From positions 54,622,001 to 54,686,000 of the forward strand of contig OZ241828.1 of the NCBI GenBank assembly GCA_965202585.1: DNA of 64,000 nucleotides, read 5' to 3'. This stretch comes from Thalia democratica (taxonomy: Eukaryota). The notes beneath the pieces are model-generated. The model ran no database searches. It was not told the origin of the DNA and saw only the letters and a program-made list of their open reading frames with translations. Below are positions 2,685 to 63,562 of this stretch, piece after piece (the stretch's first letter is position 1; every line of letters begins with the position of its first letter). The translations under genes and the position numbers were made by a program.

Positions 2685-2850
2685 AGCGTTCAAAAATTTT
2701 GGCCCAAAGAAAAAACCTTTCGGTTATCCAGTCGTACACCACGGATACAGTTTAATGTCTTGTCCAGGACAAACATGAAAAGAAATAACTCACTAAAACT
2801 ATTTCAACGCGTTTTAACTAAAAACCCTAGTACCGTTTTTTCTTAATAAA
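2685..2850 (+). repeat. Dispersed repeat without obvious TIRs (family also near 17800, 39515, 50810)
   Basis: Shares aagcg(c/t)tc-aaaa-tttgg with the 17.8 and 39.5 kb copies and gtc(g)tacaccacggatac...ttgtc(c/t)aggacaa with the 50.8 kb copy. Confidence 0.5.
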
Positions 2851-3143
2851 CTTCTGTAACATTTTTTTTACGTTTTGTTTCCCTACTGATTTTAATTAAA
2901 AAAATATTTATAAATTACTTATTTCTTAAATTTGAAAAGTGAAATTATTTTGTGTAGCACTCAACAGAATCAAGTTGCTAAAGCTGTTTTTAGAATACTT
3001 GTCTATACAACAGCTTTTTCATTTTGTATACAAAAAACTTTTTTAAATAAAAATGAATGCGTATTAGAATAGAAAAGCAATGAACCGTTTTTCCACTCAT
3101 CTCATAACTGTATACACATTGCAGAAATAAAATAATTAAAACA

Positions 3144-3728
3144 ATGAACATACTGAGCAAAGTGAGGCTGGTGCGAGCCGACATAACGACGTTGAAAGTG
3201 GACTGCATCGTCAACGCGGCCAACGAAACGCTGCTCGGCCTGGGCAGGAACAAGCGCCGCTACAAGGGAATAGCCGAAGCGACCAGGCTGGCGGCCGGAG
3301 ACGAAATCGTGGACGAGTGCGAGCGGCTGAGCAACACGGGAGGGTGCAGGACCGGGCAGGCCGTCATCACCGGAGGCTACAAGCTGCCGGCGAAGCGCGT
3401 GATACACGCCGTCGGGCCGCGCAAGAAGACGACGGGAATCAACTTCAAGCTGCTGGCGAGCGCGTACAGGAGCAGCTTGGAAGTGATGAGGGAGAACGGG
3501 ATGAGGAGCGTCGCGTTCTGCTGCATCTCGACGGGCCTCTTCGGCCACCCCAACGAGAGGTCGGCGGAGGTGGCGTTCGAAACCGTGTGCAAGTGGTTGG
3601 AGCGGAACTGGGACGACGTGGACGAAGTCGTGTTTTGCACCTGGCTCGACAAGGACCACGCCATTTACAAGAACCTGATCGCTCAAAAAATCAAGCTTCA
3701 GCTGCAAAGTAGTGATGACTTGTTTTAG
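3144..3728 (+). CDS. Macrodomain protein, MacroD/YmdB class (ADP-ribose binder or hydrolase-like), 194 aa, intronless CDS
   Basis: Motifs ADIT, CIVNAAN, G.AVITGGYKLPAKRVIHAVGP, VAFCCISTGLFGHP and a eukaryotic MacroD-like C-terminus (KWLERNWDDVDEVVFCTWLDKDHAIYK); ATG to TAG; very high GC3; possible 5'-UTR acceptor ttgcag about 20 nt upstream. Confidence 0.95.
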   Translation: MNILSKVRLVRADITTLKVDCIVNAANETLLGLGRNKRRYKGIAEATRLAAGDEIVDECERLSNTGGCRTGQAVITGGYKLPAKRVIHAVGPRKKTTGINFKLLASAYRSSLEVMRENGMRSVAFCCISTGLFGHPNERSAEVAFETVCKWLERNWDDVDEVVFCTWLDKDHAIYKNLIAQKIKLQLQSSDDLF

Positions 3729-6105
3729 TGGCAGTTGTGTATATTTGAACATTAGGTAATAAATTATTAGTCAAAAAAGTTCGACTAATGTTTATTTTTT
3801 TATAACACCTATTTCTAAAAAACTAGTAATGTTTTAATGTACTTAAAAGTAAATGTGTTAGCTAGTCAACTATTAAAACTAATCAATATACGGATTTAAC
3901 TAGTAAAGTCAATAAAACTAGAGAAACTACTCCATTTTAAATTCAACAAATTAACGCGATTTTTATTAATACTTTATATTAAAAAACACTTGAAATTAGC
4001 TAGCTATTAAATAACTTAAAAGAAATAACATGTGCAAAAAAAAATCTACAAAAAACCATAAATACTTATAAACCTGAAACAGTGAAACAGCCTATACTTT
4101 TATGTAGTTTTGTTAATTTATAGTTTGACTTTATTGAAATTTCAAAACAGTCTTACACTTTATGCTCTAATGTGTGTTTAAATATATCTTCAAATCGATT
4201 AAGTTGAAAGAAAACCAGTTTCTAGGTTCAGCTGTTTTAGTATTTAAAAATAAGCAAGAAAATATTTTGATATTTATGATTAGTTTAAAGCTAATTAGTT
4301 TTACTTAATTTACAATCATAGTTAAATTTATTGCTTCGACAATAACTTAGCTAAAAATACAATTTAAAGAAGTGTAATTTATTCTGTATAACCGTATTTT
4401 GTCTGAAAATAAAATTACAAATTTAAACAAAACTAGCATTATATTGTTATTAAATTTACAAATTTATACTTGAAAAATTGAAAACAAAAAACTGATTTTT
4501 TCTTTAAATTTTACAAAAAACTAATTAAACAACAACTTATGCTTTGATCATCCTCAAACTTCAAGGATACTTGTTTAAAATGCAGCGATTCTTTTTTTAA
4601 GTTTAATAGTTACTTAAACTTAAAAACATTTAATAAAAAATAGAAAAATTTACACCAATTCAACAAAAATTGAAATAAACCAAATATTTTACACCCTACA
4701 GGAAACTAAAAATATGCAACCTTAAAAAAACTACCAAAATTTGTTGTGGATGGAAAGTTTTTTTTCTAACCATTAAGTTTTAAATAAAACTTTTTTATAA
4801 AATATATATATTCAATTAACACATTGCTAACATTATGAAGAAAACATTATATTGAATTGCCTTATAATCATTTTATTTTGTAATATATAATAGTTTTTTT
4901 TTAAATGGTACATTCAAATTAATTTTTTGAAAAGGTTGTGTACAAAAAATCTTATTGTTATTTTTATTTCTATGCAGAAATAAATTTCTGACACTTAATC
5001 CTAATAAGTTTAAATTTAGGATTCAGTGTCATAAACTTATTTTAGCATAGAAAAAATAAAAATTTCATAAAAAATTAATTTGAATGTACTCAAAAAAAAC
5101 TATTATGTATTACAAAATAAAATGATTATAAGGCAACTCCATACCTGTATTGGAACATTTTATGCTGTAATCAATTTAGAAAAACTGCTTTTTTTTATAT
5201 ACTTGTTAAAGAGTTGTAAATTTAAAAAATTATAATATGTTTTTTAGTTGCCTTAAGCTGACTTAGGACTAACTATTTTAATAAATTAGTATTGCTCAGT
5301 TATGAAATTAAAATATTATTTATTAGATTAGTTAGTCCTAAGTCTAACTTTTTTAAAACTTTTGCATTGTAAAAATACAACGAAGTTTATTAAACTCGAA
5401 TTTTTTTAAAACACTTATTAGTATTTTTACTTTAGTTATCCAAAAATACTTCAAAACTAGTTCAGCTTATATAAGTTAAAAACAATTGATAGATTAAGAA
5501 ATTTATATGAAAATAACTTTAAGTAAACGTAGAAACTTAATTTTAAACTTATTTCGGGTTAGAATAAAAAATTAATACTGTTTTAAAAATTTACTATTAG
5601 TCAAATGCTTAAACATGAATGTATAAAACCAAAAATTTTAAACTGTCTAATTTAAATAAAATGCTTTTAATTTTTAACTACTATGAAATTTTTTTTTTTA
5701 GTTATTAAGAGTTTAAACTTAAAATTTGAAACCTATTTTAATAGGTTTCTTACTAGACTTGTTCATATGTGATGACTAGTAAAAGAATAGACAGCTATGA
5801 AGTTCTTTAAATAAAATTTCCATCATTACTAAAGCCTTATGTAGTTTAAAGTACAGAAACAGGTCTCGGGAGTTATTAAACTAAACTTAAATCAGAATTA
5901 AAAAAAAGAAAGAAATTTTTCTAATATTAAATTTTATATAAACACTACAGGTACTAATGTAACTATTTGAGCGGACTGTTTGATATGTTTGATTAAGCGG
6001 TTAGTTTACATACAATAAGCTTATCACAAAATATCCAAATAAAGCTCTTCAAATACTTTTACCATAGGGTTTAGTTTTATGCTTATATTTTTGCAAGATA
6101 CTTAT

Positions 6106-7866: not shown

Positions 7867-8625
7867 ATGAATACCATCAAAATAAAACTTCATATTTTTC
7901 GCCAAAGCTTTTCAACATTAGACACTTTTCTTAAGGAGTCTACACATCTGGAGTTTGATGCAATTGAGATTGCACCAGGAATACAGCTGTCTCTAAAAGA
8001 ATTTTTACAGACTTATGCTCAAGAAGCTCTACATTATTCTGGGCTTGTTTCATGTCTACCTCAATTGATAGACTTCGATAACCGTTGGAAGGTGTTGAGC
8101 ACAAACTGGAATGCACCAGTGTCTGGTTTCGTCCAGCTAAATAGCGGACAATTTTCTCGAGATGACACAATAGTCATGTTCCTCAATATTTTTAATGTTG
8201 CTCCTAGTCCCCAAGACTTTTTACCGGAATTTCAAGTTGTGTTTTATTTAAAATTTCACCTAATCAATCCAATTGACCACAGAGTTCGTGTACCAATTCA
8301 TACAATATATTTATCAGATCAACAACTGCAAGAATCTCTAAATGATGTTGTGAAATATTGCATTCTAGCAAAAGTACATATATCCAGAGAAAAGATTAAT
8401 ACACGTACTAAATGTACATACCATATTTTTGCAATAAAACGCGATGGTGCATCACCAGTTTTACCAGAGGAAAGCGAGCTAAATATTCCTGAATTTATTC
8501 AAGGTCGGAGGACGGATTTACCAGATCCTAATAAACTCATAGTACTAGTTCACGCTTTTTTCATACAGAAGGTAAATCCAGTATCCAGTGGACAATTCAC
8601 CCGAATGACAAAAGGACAAATGTAG
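7867..8625 (+). CDS. Orphan protein, 252 aa (paralogue of 20940-21704); possible tandem beta-grasp domains
   Basis: Long ATG-initiated ORF in AT-rich DNA with raised GC; collinear protein similarity to the 254-aa minus-strand ORF (LH.SG.VSC.PQLIDF; IKRDGASPV; LPDPNKLIVL.HAF). Confidence 0.85.
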   Translation: MNTIKIKLHIFRQSFSTLDTFLKESTHLEFDAIEIAPGIQLSLKEFLQTYAQEALHYSGLVSCLPQLIDFDNRWKVLSTNWNAPVSGFVQLNSGQFSRDDTIVMFLNIFNVAPSPQDFLPEFQVVFYLKFHLINPIDHRVRVPIHTIYLSDQQLQESLNDVVKYCILAKVHISREKINTRTKCTYHIFAIKRDGASPVLPEESELNIPEFIQGRRTDLPDPNKLIVLVHAFFIQKVNPVSSGQFTRMTKGQM

Positions 8626-20939: not shown

Positions 20940-21704
20940 TTAAGCCCTGTCAGTGATACTGATCTGTTTGGGCTCGATACACTTTCTAGATGAAAAAGCG
21001 TGGATTAGAACTATGAGTTTATTAGGATCTGGTAATTCCGTCTTACGATCTTCAATAAACTGAGGAGTGTTAAGGTTGTATTCCTCAGAGTAAACAGGTG
21101 ATGCTCCGTCGCGTTTTATTGTGAAAAAATAGAATGTAGGAGTTACACTTGTATCAAGCTGTTCTTTGGATTCAGCTGCTGCTAATTTAATGAATTCGGT
21201 TACAGCATCAACTATAGGTACTTGAAATTGTTGATTTAATAACGAACATTTTAATTTTGTTACAGCAAGCTTGTTGTCGTTTGAGTTGAACAAGTGTAGT
21301 TTTACGCAAAATTCCACACGAAAATCTAGTATAGTGTTTTGGGGACTAGGGTCAACAGTAAAAATGTCAAGGAGCATGACTAATCTGTTATCCCGTATAC
21401 AATGTTCTCTATTTCGCTGGGCAAAGCTACATACTGATTCATTCCAGTCACCTCTGCCAAGTTGCAAAACCGAAAGGTGTTTGAAGTCTATCAATTGAGG
21501 TATACAAGAAACAGGCCCAGATATATGTAGGTTTTCTTGAGCACATTTCTGTAAAAAGAATTGAATAGAATGTTGTGTTTCTGATGCATTGAAAACTAAC
21601 ATTGATTCAAGATTTGTTTGATTGTTTATAAGACTTTGAACAAAAGTTTGACCAGCAGAAAAGTTCTGGCGAAAAACATGAAGTTCTATTCCAATGACAC
21701 TCAT
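20940..21704 (-). CDS. Orphan protein, 254 aa (paralogue of 7867-8625)
   Basis: ATG-initiated intronless ORF; full-length collinear similarity to the 252-aa ORF, about 40% identity by eye. Confidence 0.85.
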   Translation of the reverse strand: MSVIGIELHVFRQNFSAGQTFVQSLINNQTNLESMLVFNASETQHSIQFFLQKCAQENLHISGPVSCIPQLIDFKHLSVLQLGRGDWNESVCSFAQRNREHCIRDNRLVMLLDIFTVDPSPQNTILDFRVEFCVKLHLFNSNDNKLAVTKLKCSLLNQQFQVPIVDAVTEFIKLAAAESKEQLDTSVTPTFYFFTIKRDGASPVYSEEYNLNTPQFIEDRKTELPDPNKLIVLIHAFSSRKCIEPKQISITDRA

Positions 21705-28207: not shown

Positions 28208-29064
28208 ATGATGTTTTCATACAATATGATTTTGGTCTCCGCTATGTTTCTTCTGCTGTTGCGCTCATCCACAGTAATGTCGGCAACTCCGACCCGTGAA
28301 GGTCCTCAAAAGAAGAAAATTACGACGAATGTGACGTCATAAGAAAGTTGGTTGGGAACGCTTCCGGAGTTAAGCAGTCGTTCGAAAACTACGACAAGAT
28401 CCAAAGTCTTTTTTCTGCTGATGGCCTCGAAATTAAAGCTGAATATCGACTTACATCCGACCAGGTTGATGAAAAGATAATCATTCCGAAGAAAGTTACT
28501 GAAGATCCCAAGTTCATATTTCTTGTCTACAGCCTTTTCGATGATATTATAGATTACAAATTGTCCTGTATAGGTGAATCTTGTTACACGTGTGAAGAAA
28601 GGTTTAAAATGTTAAAATGTCCAATTAAATTTGAAGATAAGTACTACGAGAAAATCGGCCCTTTTGATACACTTATTATGACAGCGTTGGAGAAGCTAAT
28701 TGACAAAGCTATAGTTACCAGTTTCCAAAGAGACGACTGTATACTCAGAGAATATTAAAGTTTTCCACTTAAACCTTGGTGTAAAGAGAAAATCAGCGCA
28801 TACGACTACTTTTCCACCTCTAGGATGTATTACAATCAGTTCTCAAACGTGACTATTGAAATGAAGTTTGACCTTTGCGAAAAGTCTGATTCTTCAAAGT
28901 GGTGCAAGTTTAGATTGGCTATTCTTTCTGATACGACAAAAGCTCCATATTCGATCACTAGATGGCGCAAACCTGCCATTCACACTTTGGTAGATCCGGT
29001 CAACGGCATGAAGATTGATTTTCTGAAAGATCCGAACGGCAAAAAGAAGCATGATGAATTTTGA
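28208..29064 (+). pseudogene. Orphan ER-luminal-type gene (signal peptide + C-terminal HDEF), copy A, disrupted
   Basis: Reconstructs to ~285 aa against copy B; -1 frameshift in the A run at 28308-28311 and TAA at 28756-28758 (TAT in copy B); joins track ORFs 28348-28758 and 28825-29064, which share a frame. Confidence 0.8.
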
Positions 29065-33723: not shown

Positions 33724-34865
33724 ATGGTGTATACAGTATATGGAACTGTTGTTGAATCCTCATCTACAAGTTAGTTTTTTATTAATGATATTTACCAAAA
33801 AAAATTCTAGCTTTAATTTACTGATTAAGTACAACTACATTAATCTGCTATCTAGGTACGCACTTGCTAGGTACAAACTGCCGGTATGGTACGCATTTCT
33901 TAGCTAAAAACGCTGTGTACAAAATGCAATTTTCATTTTGATTTTTAAATAAAAAATAGAATTTCAATGTAGTAATAAAAAAACATTATATTTAAAAAAA
34001 AAGGTTGTGCTGTATCGGATTAAAGTAATTAACAATTATGTTAACAAAACAATATAATTGATGTTCAAGTTTTTCAAACGTTTTGATAAGTAAGTAATTT
34101 CAAATTTTTATACGATTTATATACAATAAAAGTTACTCTTATTCAGATTTGGAAAATATTAACAAAGATAGTTGGAAGTACAATCTTCAACTGATGAAAG
34201 AAACTTCTGATGAGTTTAAGTTCGTAAAAGAATTTTATTACACAACTACGACAAGACACTACGGCAAGACTTTAAAACTTTTTCAAATATACAAAGTCAT
34301 CGAGCAAAACAAAAAGGCAACAGACAATGTAAAAAGCAGCAACTTAATGTTGTTTCATGGTACTAGTAAAAAAGGTGTAGCTGGTATTTTAGAAACTGGT
34401 TACATAAACTCTGTTATGGGTGATTTCGGAAGAGGCGTGTACCTAACCGAAAGTTCTGACTTGGCGTCTATATATTCCGGCGGAAGAAGATCTGAAGAAA
34501 GTAATATACACTCCATGTTTGTCAATGAAATTCTCGAGTCACAAAAATTGCAAACAGTTTTTCACGAAAACTTAAGTTTTATATATGGCGGTAGTTCCAT
34601 GTATAGATTGGAATTTATAAGGCTCGTAGATAAATCACATGACGTTGAATTTACAAAATACGTAAACAAATTAAACTTGGAAATCAGTGAAGAGCAGTAC
34701 ACGAAAGATCGTTTAGAAAAAGCTGAAGAAGAGTACAGAAGAGATCTTTTGGGAAGAAGATACAGAAATATGGCGATTGATCGGAAAAGTATAACAGATC
34801 ACTTTGTCGCAGATTGTCAAGTAACCATACCAAGGTACTTGATAAGTTACGAGCAGACTTGGTAA
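33724..34865 (+). CDS. Single-domain PARP-family (ARTD) ADP-ribosyltransferase, 254 aa; exons 33724-33769 and 34147-34865
   Basis: LFHGT (His), GDFGRGVYLTESSDLASIYS (Tyr), terminal IPRYLISY strand. First exon MVYTVYGTVVESSST+A|gttagt is conserved with its ATG and donor in duplicate B and is phase-compatible with acceptor cttattcag|AT. Confidence 0.9.
33836..33935 (+). mobile_element. Left-end remnant of Tc1/pogo-like MITE in the PARP intron
   Basis: Aligns with 48848-48925 in duplicate B; remainder missing. Confidence 0.55.
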
Positions 34866-45384: not shown

Positions 45385-46245
45385 ATGATGTTTTCATACA
45401 ATGTGATTTTGGTCTCCGCCATGTTTCTTCTGATGTTGCGCTTATCCACAGTAATGTCGGCAAATCCGCTGCGTGAAGGTCCTCAAAAAGAAGAAAATTA
45501 CGACGGATGTGAAGTCGTTAGAAAGCTGGTTGAGAACGCTTACGGAGTTAAACAGTCGTTTAAGAACTACGACAAGATCCACAGTCTTTTTTTTTGCTGA
45601 TGGCCTCGAGATTAAAGCTGAATTTCGATTAACATCCGACCAAGTTGATGAAAAGATTACCATTCCGAAGAAAGTTACTGAAGATCCCAAGTTCATATTT
45701 CTTGTTGACAGCCTTTTTGATGACATTATAGATTACAAATTGTCCTGTATAGGTGAATTGTGTTACACGTGTGAAGAAAGACTCCAAATGTTTGAATTAT
45801 GTCCATTTGAGTTAACAGCAGAACACTACGCTATAATTGGCTCCGTAGAGTTGTTTGATTTGTCAGCGTTAGAAAAGCTAGTTCACAGAGCTACAGTTAC
45901 CAGTTTCTATGGAGACGATTGTATGTTTGCAGAATATTATGATTTACCACTTAAACCTTGGTGTAGGAGAAAATCAGCATATTCGACTACTTTTCCATCT
46001 CTAGGATGTATTACAACCAGTTCTCAAACGTGACTATTGAAATGAAGTTTGAACTCTGCGAAAAGTCTGATTCCTCAAAGTGCTACCAGTTCGGATTGGC
46101 TATTTCTTCTGATACTTCAAAAGCTCCACATTATATCACTAGATGGCGCAAACCTGCCATTCTCACTTTGATAGATCCGTTCAACGGCATGAAGATTGAT
46201 TTTCTGAAAGATGTGAACGGCAAAAAGAAGCATGATGAATTTTAA
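45385..46245 (+). pseudogene. Orphan ER-luminal-type gene (signal peptide + HDEF), copy B, disrupted
   Basis: +1 frameshift in the T run at 45587-45595 (stop at 45598-45600) and a compensating -1 near 45964; reconstructs to ~286 aa ending KKKHDEF. Confidence 0.8.
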
Positions 46246-50970: not shown

Positions 50971-52654
50971 TAACGACTGTTAAAATTACCACCAGAGTTA
51001 AAGTTATAAATTGAATAACAGTTCCCTTCACTGTATATCTACATTTATTTATACTGAAGACTTTTATTAGAAAATAGTTATAACCCTGTGTTATCGTTCA
51101 GAATATTAAAATAACCAGAACAATTTTTTAACAGTTATGTTATCAAAGTAATATGATTTTCATTCAAGTTTTTGAAACGCTTTGATAATTAATTTTAAAT
51201 TTTTATACGATTTAAACACCATAAAACTTAACTCTTATTCAGATTTGGAAAATATTAACAAAGATTGTTGGATGTACAATCTCCAACAGCTAGAAAAAAA
51301 TTCAGATGAGTTTAAGTTGGTAAAAGAGTTTTTTCACACAACTTCGACAAAAAACTCTGGCTACTGCATGACTTTAAAAAAATTTCAAATACACAAGGTC
51401 ATCTAGCAAAACAAAAAGGCAACAGACAATGTAAAAAGCAGCAACTTAATGTTGTTTCATGGTACTGGTAAAAAAGGTGTAGCTGGTATTTTAGAAACTG
51501 GTTACAGAAACTCTGTTAAGGGTGATTTTGGAAGAGGTGTATACCTAACCGAAAGTTCTGATTTGGCGTCTATATATTCCGGCGGAAGAGACACTGAAAA
51601 AATGTACTTCATGTTTGTCATTGAAATTCTCGAGTCACAAATAGATACTTCAAAAGAAGATACAGAAATACTGCAGTGGATCGAAAAAGTATAACATATC
51701 ACTTTTTTGCAGTTTGTCAAGTAATCATACCAAGGTATTTGATAGTTTTCGGGGTTAACGAACATCTGCCCATGGTAGACTTATTCTCTATAGACAAAGT
51801 CTGAGAACAACATAGATATTGTTGTTTAAAATAAAATAAAGTTTCGTAAATCCTAGATACAATTATTTCTGACATAGATTTTTAAATAAACATTTGAGAA
51901 TATTATCATTGCTATGATCGAAAACGTTAATATATTCTACTAAAAAAATAATAATTTCTTTAGTTTGTATACTACAACTTTCAAAAAAATAAAACTAAAC
52001 ATTAATTATTTCAATAGTGTCAGTGTTAGTTCACAAGGTTTAATATTTTAAAACTTTATCATAATATTTGTAAAACCACCAAACTTACAATTTCTTTGCT
52101 TAAATTTAAAACTATAATTTCGTAAGTTAGCATATAAAATTTCCATTTAAATTGAGTATAATTAGTGTTGATAATTAATTGAATTTTATAATTGAATATT
52201 TTATAATTTTCTTTTTCAAAATTCGTTTTCTACAGATTTCGAAAATGATAGTTAAATATTATAAATTTGTAAATTAAATGCCAGTTAAAATTAGTTTTAC
52301 TATTTCTGAAAATTTAAAAAAGGAACGTTTGGTTCTGATATGGTCTGTATGATACCACAAACACTGATTCACATAATTAAAATTTTATAATGAATTATAT
52401 AATTAAGTTTAAACTTAAATCTTCGTACAAAACTATAAACACTAAAAATATAAGCAAGCTGTACTGTTTTCTTCTAACAATTGACTAAAATAATAGTTTT
52501 ACAAAATAATAATCAATATAAAGTAGTCAGTTTATAAGCAAAAAATTAATAAAAATATAATAAATATCATCATTTGTCATTAAACAAACTTAATAACAAT
52601 ATGTAGATTAAATCAACAAAGTTTCTTTTTTGGATCTTTAGTAAAGTATTACAA

Positions 52655-61736: not shown

Positions 61737-63562
61737 TTACCGTCTGAACAAACCAAAAGCCGAATCTATTACAGTGCCAACTAAAGCAAAAAGACCTGGT
61801 ATGACCGGTCTTGCATTTTGCTGCTGTAATGCCAACTCGTTCATTCTTTCTATATACCGCTTTTGCTCCTCTGCGTGTGATCGTTCCATTCTTTCCATTT
61901 GAGCATCATGGATCTTTTGCCGTTGTTCCCGGTCCTTCTCAATCTTGTTTAACTTGCCCATTAAACTTTGGTTTTGTTTTACACTAAAGTCCTCAAGTTG
62001 TTTTATGTTAAGTGCAAAGTTTTCCTGTTGCTCTTTGTGTTGCTTTTTTAACACTGCCATTTGCTCCTTGCTTGCTTTGTCTTTCTTTTTTTTCAATTCA
62101 GCCATTTCTTTTTCGTACTTTTCATCCTGCAGTTTTTTTCTACTTTGAACTTTTCTGATGGCATCCTGGTTTTTTTCTTCCAAAATTACCTTTTCTTCCT
62201 TAATCTTTTTAATCATTTGGTTTTGTTTTTGGTTCTCCTGACTATATGTTTCTTTAAACTTTTTTATTTCTTCAGTGTGCTCTTTTTGCTTTTTTATAAT
62301 GATCTTCTCAATGTTTGACTTCTTCTTTTCAATAACGTTTGTTTCGTTCTTTAAGCTAACTTTAGCTTTAATATCTAATATTACCTCTTCTATATTACCT
62401 TCTAGTTTTGCTTTATATTTATCTTTTGTGTTGTGATCAATTGTTTTTAAGTTTAAAAACTTCGTGACAACAGTCTTTTTAAGGTTTTGAAACGATTCAG
62501 TTAGTTTGTCGGGGTTACCAAAGTCGAGTAATTTAGCAAGATTGAAAAACTCGTTTAAATACTGATCGTAGAATTTGCTGTAGAATGACTCTGACATAGC
62601 TTGAACCAGTGTGTACTCAACAGGTGTGTCTGTATTCTTAAAGTGCTCTGTAAAGGTTTCGAATATTTTCGGTATGTCGGCGCATTTTATCGAAACTCCG
62701 TTTAATTTTTTTTCGTTTTCATAAGACTGCTGTATAACAGTTTTTACAAAAATGCCCATCTCTTGGACAAACAATTCTTCGACCGACCCCAATGTCCCAT
62801 CCTCGTCTAACTCTTCTCCCGGGTCGGGCATCAAAAAGCATTGGACTTCTTCGAAAGAGTTTTTCAGTAGTTTTTTGTGGTAACTCATCACGTCCTTATC
62901 CAGCCAATCTTCATTTAAATAGTCAATGCCGGCTTTGAACCCGTAATCATATTCATCAATGTGGCGCCAATCGCGTACAAGAAATATCAAGGATTGAAAC
63001 GGTTTACAGTCGCTGTTGTCCAAAAAGAAACTTGCATACGTTGAAAACAGTTCAAGATGCTCAAATTTGTCTTTACTTAATTCTCTGGTAACGTTGTAAA
63101 TTTGTACGCTGCTTATAAGAGTACTTAGAGAAAACAAAATTTTATTTTCCTTTTCAGTAGACTCGTTATCAAAAGTACCTTGTGTGTCGATTAGTAGAAA
63201 AGCTTTTTCAGTTTCTTTTAATTTAACTTTGAATATTTTGCTGTATGCTAGCATCCCTTTAGTTTCACGAACAATACCTGATTTGTATTTGAAACCAGAA
63301 AAGTCTTCTGGAATGCCACTAATTTCATCAAGAGGTGTGCCATTTTCCATTTTAGACAATCGGTCGATAAACCAATTCAAAAGAAATGACTTACCGGAAC
63401 GATAAGGTCCCGCGACAACTAAAACAACTACTTCAAGATTATCTACATTGTTAAACTGAACAATGCTTTCAAAATTTTCTTTGTGGTAAATTATACTTTC
63501 ATCATCTTGCGAATATGAAACTATTTGAACTGCTTTAGGATTATTGTCGAGGATTGAAATTC
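61737..63562 (-). CDS. Atlastin/GBP-family large GTPase with long C-terminal coiled coil, 5'-partial (~608 aa in one exon)
   Basis: The frame extends 60 codons upstream of the track ORF to acceptor ccttag|GA and contains P-loop GPYRSGKSFL, RETKG, LLIDTQG (G3) and FLVRDW (atlastin-type RD motif); E/K/Q-rich coiled coil; no start exon found in the window. Confidence 0.92.

Follow-up and report, generated by a model that had tools for sequence, protein, structure and literature searches.

A GC-rich MacroD-type gene in the AT-rich genome of Thalia democratica, probably a native member of a lineage-specific family

The window analysed here is a stretch of 64,000 nucleotides (nt) from the genome of Thalia democratica (assembly GCA_965202585.1, contig OZ241828.1, positions 54,622,001 to 54,686,000, forward strand). 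Close to its start lies a gene for a stand-alone macrodomain, which forms a sharp island of high guanine-plus-cytosine content (GC) in very AT-rich DNA. It is probably a native gene of this AT-rich marine planktonic animal and a member of a lineage-specific MacroD family, the high GC at third codon positions (GC3) being a codon style of the host. Native origin, taken alone, is very probable. Selection at the codon level as the cause of the GC3 bias is a matter on which the balance is even.

Composition, structure and family of the island

The open reading frame (ORF) of the gene, located on the forward strand (Table 1), comprises 585 nt or 194 codons. Its GC is 0.595, with 0.52 at first (GC1), 0.42 at second (GC2) and 0.85 at third codon positions. 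GC is 0.278 in the 500 nt upstream, 0.236 in the 500 nt downstream and 0.258 in the remaining window. Among all 585-nt segments of the 64 kb (mean 0.259, standard deviation 0.045), 0.39 is the highest GC reached elsewhere. At about 7.5 standard deviations above the mean, the island is the only one of its kind in the window; a 1-kb GC profile gave no second one. Calculated per block of 10 codons, GC3 is 0.7-1.0 across codons 1-180, then 0.4 and 0.6 in the final 14 codons. The remaining long open frames of the window have a GC3 of 0.27-0.50. These values bear out the initial annotation, which had described from the letters alone a coding sequence of about 60% GC with nearly all third positions G or C, AT-rich flanks (measured at 0.22-0.28), AT-rich codons in the other coding sequences, a shift that is abrupt at the ATG and fades in the last ~12 codons, and the hexamer ttgcag at about position 3122, now placed exactly (Table 1).

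The island is neither a chimeric assembly nor a contaminant, since contigs from other runs and from a metagenome cross its junctions. Contigs of run X1, probably the source run, cover 2955-3684 with zero differences. A 950-nt contig of run X3, from a second organism or sample, covers 2847-3795 and thereby spans the two junctions; it differs by 11 substitutions and an additional A. L001, a metagenome contig from Tara Oceans, encodes a protein of 93% identity, and its coding sequence is likewise enclosed in AT-rich DNA, with the same 'cacattgcag' ahead of the ATG. The unplaced contig C397 of the same assembly carries a 98%-identical copy (L004) with flanks differing by 4-7%, apparently a haplotig or a very recent duplicate. 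Both L001 and L004 have the same flanks as the window gene.

A family search in the whole 802-Mb assembly yielded 11 matches. The open frame is uninterrupted in nine of them, located on contigs C2, C4, C5, C6 (five copies), C9 and C397, and the two others are decayed fragments. The GC3 values of the intact copies are 0.85, 0.85, 0.76, 0.72, 0.51, 0.49, 0.46, 0.37 and 0.36, and every copy is flanked by DNA of 0.22-0.29 GC. The canonical MacroD loop GG[GA]GVDG[CR]IHRAAG is retained in six copies (L006-L011); the window gene, L004 and L005 have a rebuilt loop in common and belong to a variant clade. GC3 ranges from 0.52 to 0.89 within the variant clade and from 0.36 to 0.72 within the canonical clade. 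Orthologues with 93%, 81% and 69% amino acid identity are present on Tara metagenome and metatranscriptome contigs, again between AT-rich flanks. The patchy presence and lack of host paralogues expected of a horizontally acquired gene are not observed: there are at least nine paralogues, and independent orthologues in metagenomes.

Between the window gene and L001, the 5' flank differs in ~27% of the aligned columns with 77 gap positions, and the 3' flank in ~21% with 40 gap positions, against 7% of the coding sequence overall and 13% of its third codon positions. The ratio of nonsynonymous to synonymous divergence (dN/dS) is 0.06-0.35 against orthologues and paralogues, and the window gene is therefore under purifying selection. 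The paralogue L005 has 67% amino acid identity to the window gene at an apparent synonymous divergence (dS) of 0.71, both having a GC3 of 0.76-0.85. The bias can decay, because L034, from another metagenome and encoding an 81%-identical protein, is nested in the high-GC3 clade and yet has a GC3 of 0.52.

The initial annotation had proposed that the gene was recently transferred from a virus or a GC-rich eukaryote. The probability of such a transfer, or of contamination or chimeric assembly, is now close to negligible. The contrast in composition is all that speaks for it. The same junctions occur on independent contigs of other runs and metagenomes, the second copy or haplotype is 98% identical with flanks that have already diverged, orthologues and paralogues up to 33% diverged in protein have the same architecture, and no relatives were found in the viral collection. 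A native exon with the same codon style, described below, is a further argument against this proposal. Chimeric assembly, which the initial annotation itself had named as a possible refutation, fails on the spanning contigs X1, X3, L001 and L004.

The coding sequence is intron-free and forms a single open frame here and in all paralogues, as in a retrogene. The intron-free state is derived, because the MacroD gene of Trichoplax has at least five coding exons over 3.7 kb, in line with the initial remark that animal MACROD genes normally contain many introns. The host-like acceptor suspected upstream has likewise gained support. L004 and the orthologue L001 from the metagenome both retain its sequence TTGCAG, though the flank is otherwise ~27% diverged. 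Of the 11 family loci read, which comprise genome copies and metagenome contigs, 9 have a pyrimidine-rich stretch ending in AG at 1-33 nt ahead of the ATG; the exceptions are L011 and the transcript L002. L002 aligns to the genomic L005 and the metagenomic L036 only from the base after 'tttaacag', and its first 75 nt were not found within 1.5 kb upstream. Because L002 matches the genome only downstream of this AG, the L005-type acceptor is used, by cis- or trans-splicing. A second transcript, L039 of the L007 type, starts at the AG of 'tttctag' and ends with a 530-nt AT-rich 3' untranslated region (UTR), AATAAA and a poly(A) tail. Transcripts of two paralogues thus break at the equivalent AG, and by analogy the window gene would use TTGCAG. 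RNA of the window gene is represented by a marine metatranscriptome contig covering 3344-3681 and by a contig of run X5 covering 3136-3624; X5 contigs touch only coding sequence and repeats, and the library type of this run is not on record. On these contigs, the gene appears to be expressed.

Two members of the family show peculiarities. L005 has ATT at 1501-1503 (C2:24976980) in place of the ATG start seen in L036 and in the transcript L002, and no in-frame ATG is located upstream. The assembled copy may be a null allele or use another start. L036, the metagenome contig encoding P0002, matches the L005-type paralogue in its 5' half and upstream flank and the window-type gene in its 3' half and downstream flank. 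This mosaic is the result of gene conversion or recombination between paralogues, or of chimeric metagenome assembly.

Codon style and its cause

GC3 was surveyed in twenty random 10-kb pieces from three chromosomes and the window, together 264 kb with 59 long open frames. The median GC3 is 0.31. Exon length is rejected as the only determinant of high GC3, because several open frames of 470-600 codons have values of 0.23-0.38 and paralogues with exons of equal length range from 0.36 to 0.85. GC3 exceeds 0.8 at only two places, the macrodomain gene and the terminal exon of a nuclear receptor on contig C4 (L021; Table 1). Nuclear hormone receptors are a metazoan-specific family. The exon has a GC of 0.62 and a GC3 of ~0.82, next to an upstream intron of 0.27 and a 3' UTR of 0.32; the jump starts right after the acceptor 'ttctgcag' and stops at the stop codon. 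Four-fold degenerate sites end in G, C, A and T in numbers of 32:23:5:1 in the macrodomain gene and 22:22:0:3 in the receptor exon. In both, CTG dominates for leucine, AGC and TCG are used for serine and AGG, CGC and CGG for arginine, and NCG codons occur freely. A composition unlike that of native genes, as expected after horizontal acquisition, is not observed, the receptor exon being a close match in codon usage and edges. Of the outcomes that the initial annotation had named as refuting its own reading, nesting among the orthologues of relatives is largely borne out, and a GC3 shared with many native genes holds for a minority class.

Two further cases illustrate the style. In a native BACK-Kelch gene (L020 5129-6484 (-), C4 near 35.0 Mb), GC3 rises within one open frame from ~0.3 to 0.6-0.8 over the last 120 codons. 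The L002 transcript, a metatranscriptome contig representing a GC3-rich paralogue, has a coding GC3 of 0.75-0.80, a 95-nt 5' UTR of 0.295 GC and a 377-nt 3' UTR of 0.27 GC; its GC enrichment is limited to the translated part.

The bias extends into the protein. In a comparison of 12 members of the family, the G/A/R/P to F/Y/M/I/N/K residue ratio rises with GC3 (rho 0.89), as do Arg/(Arg+Lys) (rho 0.89) and GC at first and second positions (rho 0.88); the values are not phylogenetically independent, and the trend is present within both clades. Among L003-L011, the observed/expected ratio of CpG dinucleotides is 0.25-0.34 in the AT3-rich paralogues versus 1.1-1.2 in the GC3-rich ones, possibly because genes that are otherwise similar differ in germline methylation.

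A native gene could also have become an island by GC-biased gene conversion, or because mutation is locally biased at a recombination hotspot. As such a process would predict, codons end in G and C about equally often, GC1, GC2, the G/A/R/P share and Arg/(Arg+Lys) all climb with GC3, CpG is undepleted in the GC-rich copies and GC3 shifts fast between close relatives. A conversion tract would, however, ignore the limits of a reading frame, whereas the jump lies at most ~10-20 nt from the ATG or acceptor at one end and from the stop codon at the other, and UTRs, intron and intergenic DNA next to it remain at 0.1-0.32 GC in the macrodomain gene, in L002 and in the receptor exon. This origin of the island is unlikely. 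Because the jump coincides with ATG or acceptor and stop codon while the UTRs stay AT-rich, selection at the level of translation is inferred rather than gene conversion, regional mutation bias or foreign origin.

The GC-richness is accordingly read as a codon-level style within the coding sequence, marked by an almost exclusive use of G/C-ending codons, G and C in similar numbers at four-fold sites, free use of NCG and a shift from lysine to arginine. The style is common to a minority of clearly native genes, is maintained over long times and can be lost, as in the orthologue L034. Selection would act through translation, by codon optimality, mRNA stability or yield. GC3-rich gene classes of other eukaryotes are similar in that a subset of genes uses G/C-ending codons, with either base, in the coding sequence only. 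GC3 codons reportedly enhance protein production even in AT-rich plants, according to the title of a preprint (10.1101/2025.11.25.690434). The present case differs from these classes in its extreme contrast, 0.85 versus a median of 0.31 in DNA of 0.25 GC, and in a coding-sequence-only enrichment that varies between paralogues and orthologues; the link to optimality in this animal would be by analogy. In a published study comparing tunicate genomes, thaliacean genomes of 743-903 Mb are described, with plots of the effective number of codons against GC3 that reach high GC3 (PMC13746493).

The protein and its relatives

The protein matches the full length of the Pfam profile Macro (PF01661; positions 1-118 of 118), with E = 1e-33. 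The N24-A-A-N27 motif is present and aligned, and loop 2 reads I-S-T-G-L-F-G-H-P at residues 128-136, in agreement with S-T-G-[IVL]-[YF]-G. The Asn of N-A-A-N contacts the distal ribose, and loop 2 binds the diphosphate. The canonical catalytic loop G-G-G-G-V-D-G-x-I-H is not found. In this loop 1, GGG-GVDGCIH of human MACROD2 is replaced by GLG-RNKRRYK-GIAEATR, with seven extra basic residues and with Ala and Arg in place of Asp and His. This replacement is a conserved feature of the variant clade, and the motif [KR]GIAEA[IT]RL[AV]AG is present in each of its six sequences. The AlphaFold model shows the alpha/beta/alpha fold of macrodomains, has a predicted local distance difference test (pLDDT) score of 89 and is least confident at loop 1, with 55. 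Studies on MacroD1/2 mutants have implicated the Asp and His of this loop in hydrolysis. The window protein is thus classed as MacroD-like in fold and ligand site and nonstandard in the catalytic loop, and its likely role is that of an ADP-ribose binder or of a hydrolase whose chemistry has changed. A likeness of the new loop, with its Gly-rich stretch and following Glu, to PARG signatures was also considered; Pfam gave no PARG match, and no claim is made.

Human MACROD2 and MACROD1 (PDB 4IQY, 6Y4Y, 2X47, 6LH4), which are mono-ADP-ribosyl and O-acetyl-ADP-ribose hydrolases, are the best matches in sequence and fold. Among solved structures, MACROD2 obtained 148 bits and MACROD1 145 bits in sequence comparison, Escherichia coli YmdB 102 bits. 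The best fold matches of the AlphaFold model were the two human proteins, with template modelling (TM) scores of 0.80-0.83 at 46-47% identity, MACROD2 coming first at 0.83; YmdB appeared at 38-39% identity. The window protein has the NAAN motif, the STG-x-[YF]-G loop 2, an 'LPAK-VIH-VGP' block and a C-terminal 'VD-x-x-FC-x-[FW]L' block in common with the human proteins. It differs from them as a stand-alone 194-residue domain without the N-terminal extension, encoded by an intron-free coding sequence, with the rebuilt loop 1 and with a 3-residue insertion ahead of the GGC motif.

An exhaustive protein search, without limit on length, placed Ciona intestinalis MACROD2 (XP_002129874.1; 54% identity, 154 bits) among the top named matches, besides a scorpion protein and chytrid MacroD1 proteins. 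In the tree, the window gene and these animal and fungal MacroD proteins fall on one side. The Ciona protein differs in its length of 539 amino acids and its canonical catalytic loop, and it did not group specifically with the window clade. The canonical paralogue L007 has Trichoplax, hymenopteran MACROD2-like, Ciona savignyi and vertebrate MACROD1/2 proteins as relatives at 59-63% identity. Three profiles were built, on which the window protein obtained 210 bits (eukaryotic MacroD), 202 bits (canonical clade of its own lineage) and 190 bits (bacterial). All six variant-clade proteins gained 12-30 bits more against the eukaryotic or own-lineage profiles than against the bacterial one. The initial impression of a eukaryotic MacroD rather than a bacterial YmdB is upheld by structures, fold and profiles alike. 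NCBIfam (NF001664) scores were 158-163 bits, all under the curated cut-offs.

Bacterial YmdB-type O-acetyl-ADP-ribose deacetylases (E. coli YmdB, PDB 5CB3/1SPV) resemble the window protein in length, stand-alone domain and fold, with ~50% identity to betaproteobacterial proteins. Apart from the lower scores given above, they differ in the canonical GGGGVDGAIH loop of YmdB and in gene architecture, which is eukaryotic in the window gene, with its acceptor and AT-rich UTRs and with polyadenylation seen in the transcript of a paralogue. A first protein search had been limited to proteins of 0.55-1.75 times the query length and had suggested bacteria as nearest relatives. This was an artefact of the length filter, which hid the longer eukaryotic MacroD proteins, and was corrected by the exhaustive search.

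In a 66-row maximum-likelihood tree, the variant clade is monophyletic (100/98). Together with one long-branch unknown protein, it is sister to the canonical plankton clade containing the paralogues of the same genome (88/95), and the bacteria are placed elsewhere. The long-branch protein, P0008, was dropped as a case of probable long-branch attraction. It has a Cys/His-bearing extended loop like that of sirtuin-linked macrodomains, whereas these Cys and His are missing from the variant clade. With the long branch removed and further eukaryotes added, a 77-row tree gave the same topology, the sister relation being supported by only 58/29 and the placement on the eukaryotic side by 87/86. The phylogeny is compatible with native origin and mildly favours it. 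Named matches, trees and profiles do not place the gene inside a foreign clade, with the caveat that approximately unbiased (AU) tests on ~187 alignment columns fail to reject a grouping of the variant clade with bacteria (p = 0.11 and 0.33), because the domain is too short and too conserved.

The AU tests leave room for an ancient transfer, in which an ancestor of this lineage of plankton took up a gene of the bacterial YmdB type or from another eukaryote; the gene would have gained an acceptor and founded the variant-loop clade, its GC being a relic of the donor. Such a history would also fit the best matches of the length-limited search, which were bacterial at 47-51% identity, and the identity to the canonical paralogues of the same genome, which is no higher (47-54%). 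Against it stand the higher scores of eukaryotic profiles and structures, the maximum-likelihood topology joining the variant clade to the clade of its own lineage, and an N-terminal motif M-x-[ILV]-L-x-K and gene architecture common to the canonical paralogues. The codon table closely matches that of the native receptor exon, and the spread of GC3 within both clades indicates gain and loss in place rather than a value frozen from the donor. An ancient transfer is quite improbable.

Balance of evidence, neighbouring features and meaning

Several observations weigh against reading the gene as a native family member in host codon style. Besides the AU result, the best matches outside the clade in the length-limited search, following the 69-93%-identical metagenomic orthologues, were bacterial at ~50% identity. 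An intron-bearing parental MACROD was not found in the search of the same genome, in which short exons could be missed. Neither a poly(A) remnant nor a target-site duplication was found, and no direct repeat brackets the window gene, as would be expected after an old founding event. The RNA evidence for the gene consists of two contigs, one of them from the run with no library type on record. GC3-rich genes are a small minority, 2 of the 59 long open frames in 264 kb. Paralogues of equal length and the same structure have low GC3, so that the cause is gene-specific. The balanced G and C endings and the shift in amino acids with GC3 look more like a compositional drive than classical tRNA-matched selection.

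With these points taken into account, a native family remains the probable reading. Most likely, the family would have been founded long ago by a processed copy of an animal MACROD gene or by wholesale intron loss. It would then have spread by DNA duplication, each copy keeping an acceptor just upstream of the ATG. A GC3-biased retrocopy, the other alternative of the initial annotation, thus came closer than the transfer. It has to be amended to an old event, to one copy among a family and to a codon style of the host, and the founding by a retrocopy is unproven, as neither parental gene nor poly(A) remnant nor target-site duplication was found. A bolder version of the native reading is doubtful. 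A gene-specific process confined to coding sequences would drive chosen genes to near-pure G/C-ending codons, pull lysine towards arginine and toggle between paralogues and orthologues over short times. It would represent an extreme, bimodal selection for codon optimality, acting here on a neofunctionalised MacroD subfamily with a rebuilt loop (basic insertion, new Glu).

Table 1. Coordinates and evidence for the macrodomain gene, its parts and the nuclear-receptor exon used for comparison.
Feature	Position	Strand	Evidence
Candidate 3' splice (or trans-splice) acceptor TTGCAG, 19 nt before ATG	3119..3124	+	conservation, paralogue transcripts
Predicted AT-rich 5' UTR segment, ~10% GC, 19 nt	3125..3143	+	composition; X5 contig begins at 3136
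MacroD-type macrodomain coding exon, single, 194 aa	3144..3728	+	ORF, Pfam, composition, predicted fold, dN/dS
Codons of variant loop 1 (GLGRNKRRYKGIAEATRL), 7 extra residues, Asp and His lost	3237..3290	+	alignment to human MACROD2, family alignment
AT-rich C-terminal tail, poorly constrained; A6/A7 run at 3685-3690	3685..3728	+	GC3 0.4-0.6; frame shift in X3, L001
AATAAA, candidate polyadenylation signal, 30 nt past stop codon	3758..3763	+	inferred only; RNA contigs stop within coding sequence
Nuclear-receptor terminal exon, ligand-binding domain, GC3 island	L021 344-1077 = C4 near 40.0 Mb	-	PF00104, E = 1.8e-21

Length differences at the A6/A7 run alter the frame between individuals or species: one extra A in X3 and L001 yields a different and shorter tail. 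The AT-rich C-terminus is poorly constrained. An antisense ORF at 3102-3752 (216 aa) and a +2-frame ORF at 3317-3712 were taken as by-products of stop-poor GC-rich sequence, not as genes.

Upstream of the gene, a ~65-nt element at 2707-2773 reaches a summed contig depth of ~385,000-540,000 (bin 2706-2839) versus ~80 for single-copy sequence in runs X1 and X3. It occurs in contigs of the RNA run too and is probably a repeat similar to short interspersed nuclear elements (SINE) or miniature inverted-repeat transposable elements (MITE). Just upstream of it, a ~27-nt motif is directly duplicated at 2631-2690.

Two related ORFs with a match to the PARP catalytic domain are located 30-48 kb downstream of the macrodomain gene, at 34149-34865 (+) (PF00644, E = 3.4e-11) and 51407-51691 (+). 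Together with the macrodomain gene they may form a local ADP-ribosylation neighbourhood, or their proximity may be a coincidence. A 547-aa ORF at 61737-63380 (-) contains the N-terminal GTPase domain of guanylate-binding proteins (PF02263, E = 1.6e-30) and a long Lys/Glu-rich tail. Two paralogous ORF pairs gave no Pfam match, 7867-8625 (+) with 20940-21704 (-) and 28348-28758 (+) with 45473-46033 (+). A protein-kinase search of the genome detected more than 100 complete domains in dense clusters, each domain contained in one open frame, at 12-18 Mb and 53.5-53.8 Mb on C8 and at 13.4-13.7 Mb and 67.5-68.0 Mb on C6. Kinase genes with domains free of introns thus seem to have expanded greatly.

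In this very AT-rich genome, a sharp GC island is no sign of transfer, and scans for horizontal gene transfer based on composition would return false positives. The native reading raises the question of what holds GC3 at 0.8-0.9 in a coding sequence beside UTRs and introns of ~0.25 GC, while paralogues of identical structure differ. For ADP-ribosylation, the family represents a lineage-specific expansion of MacroD domains, one subclade of which has swapped its catalytic loop under purifying selection.

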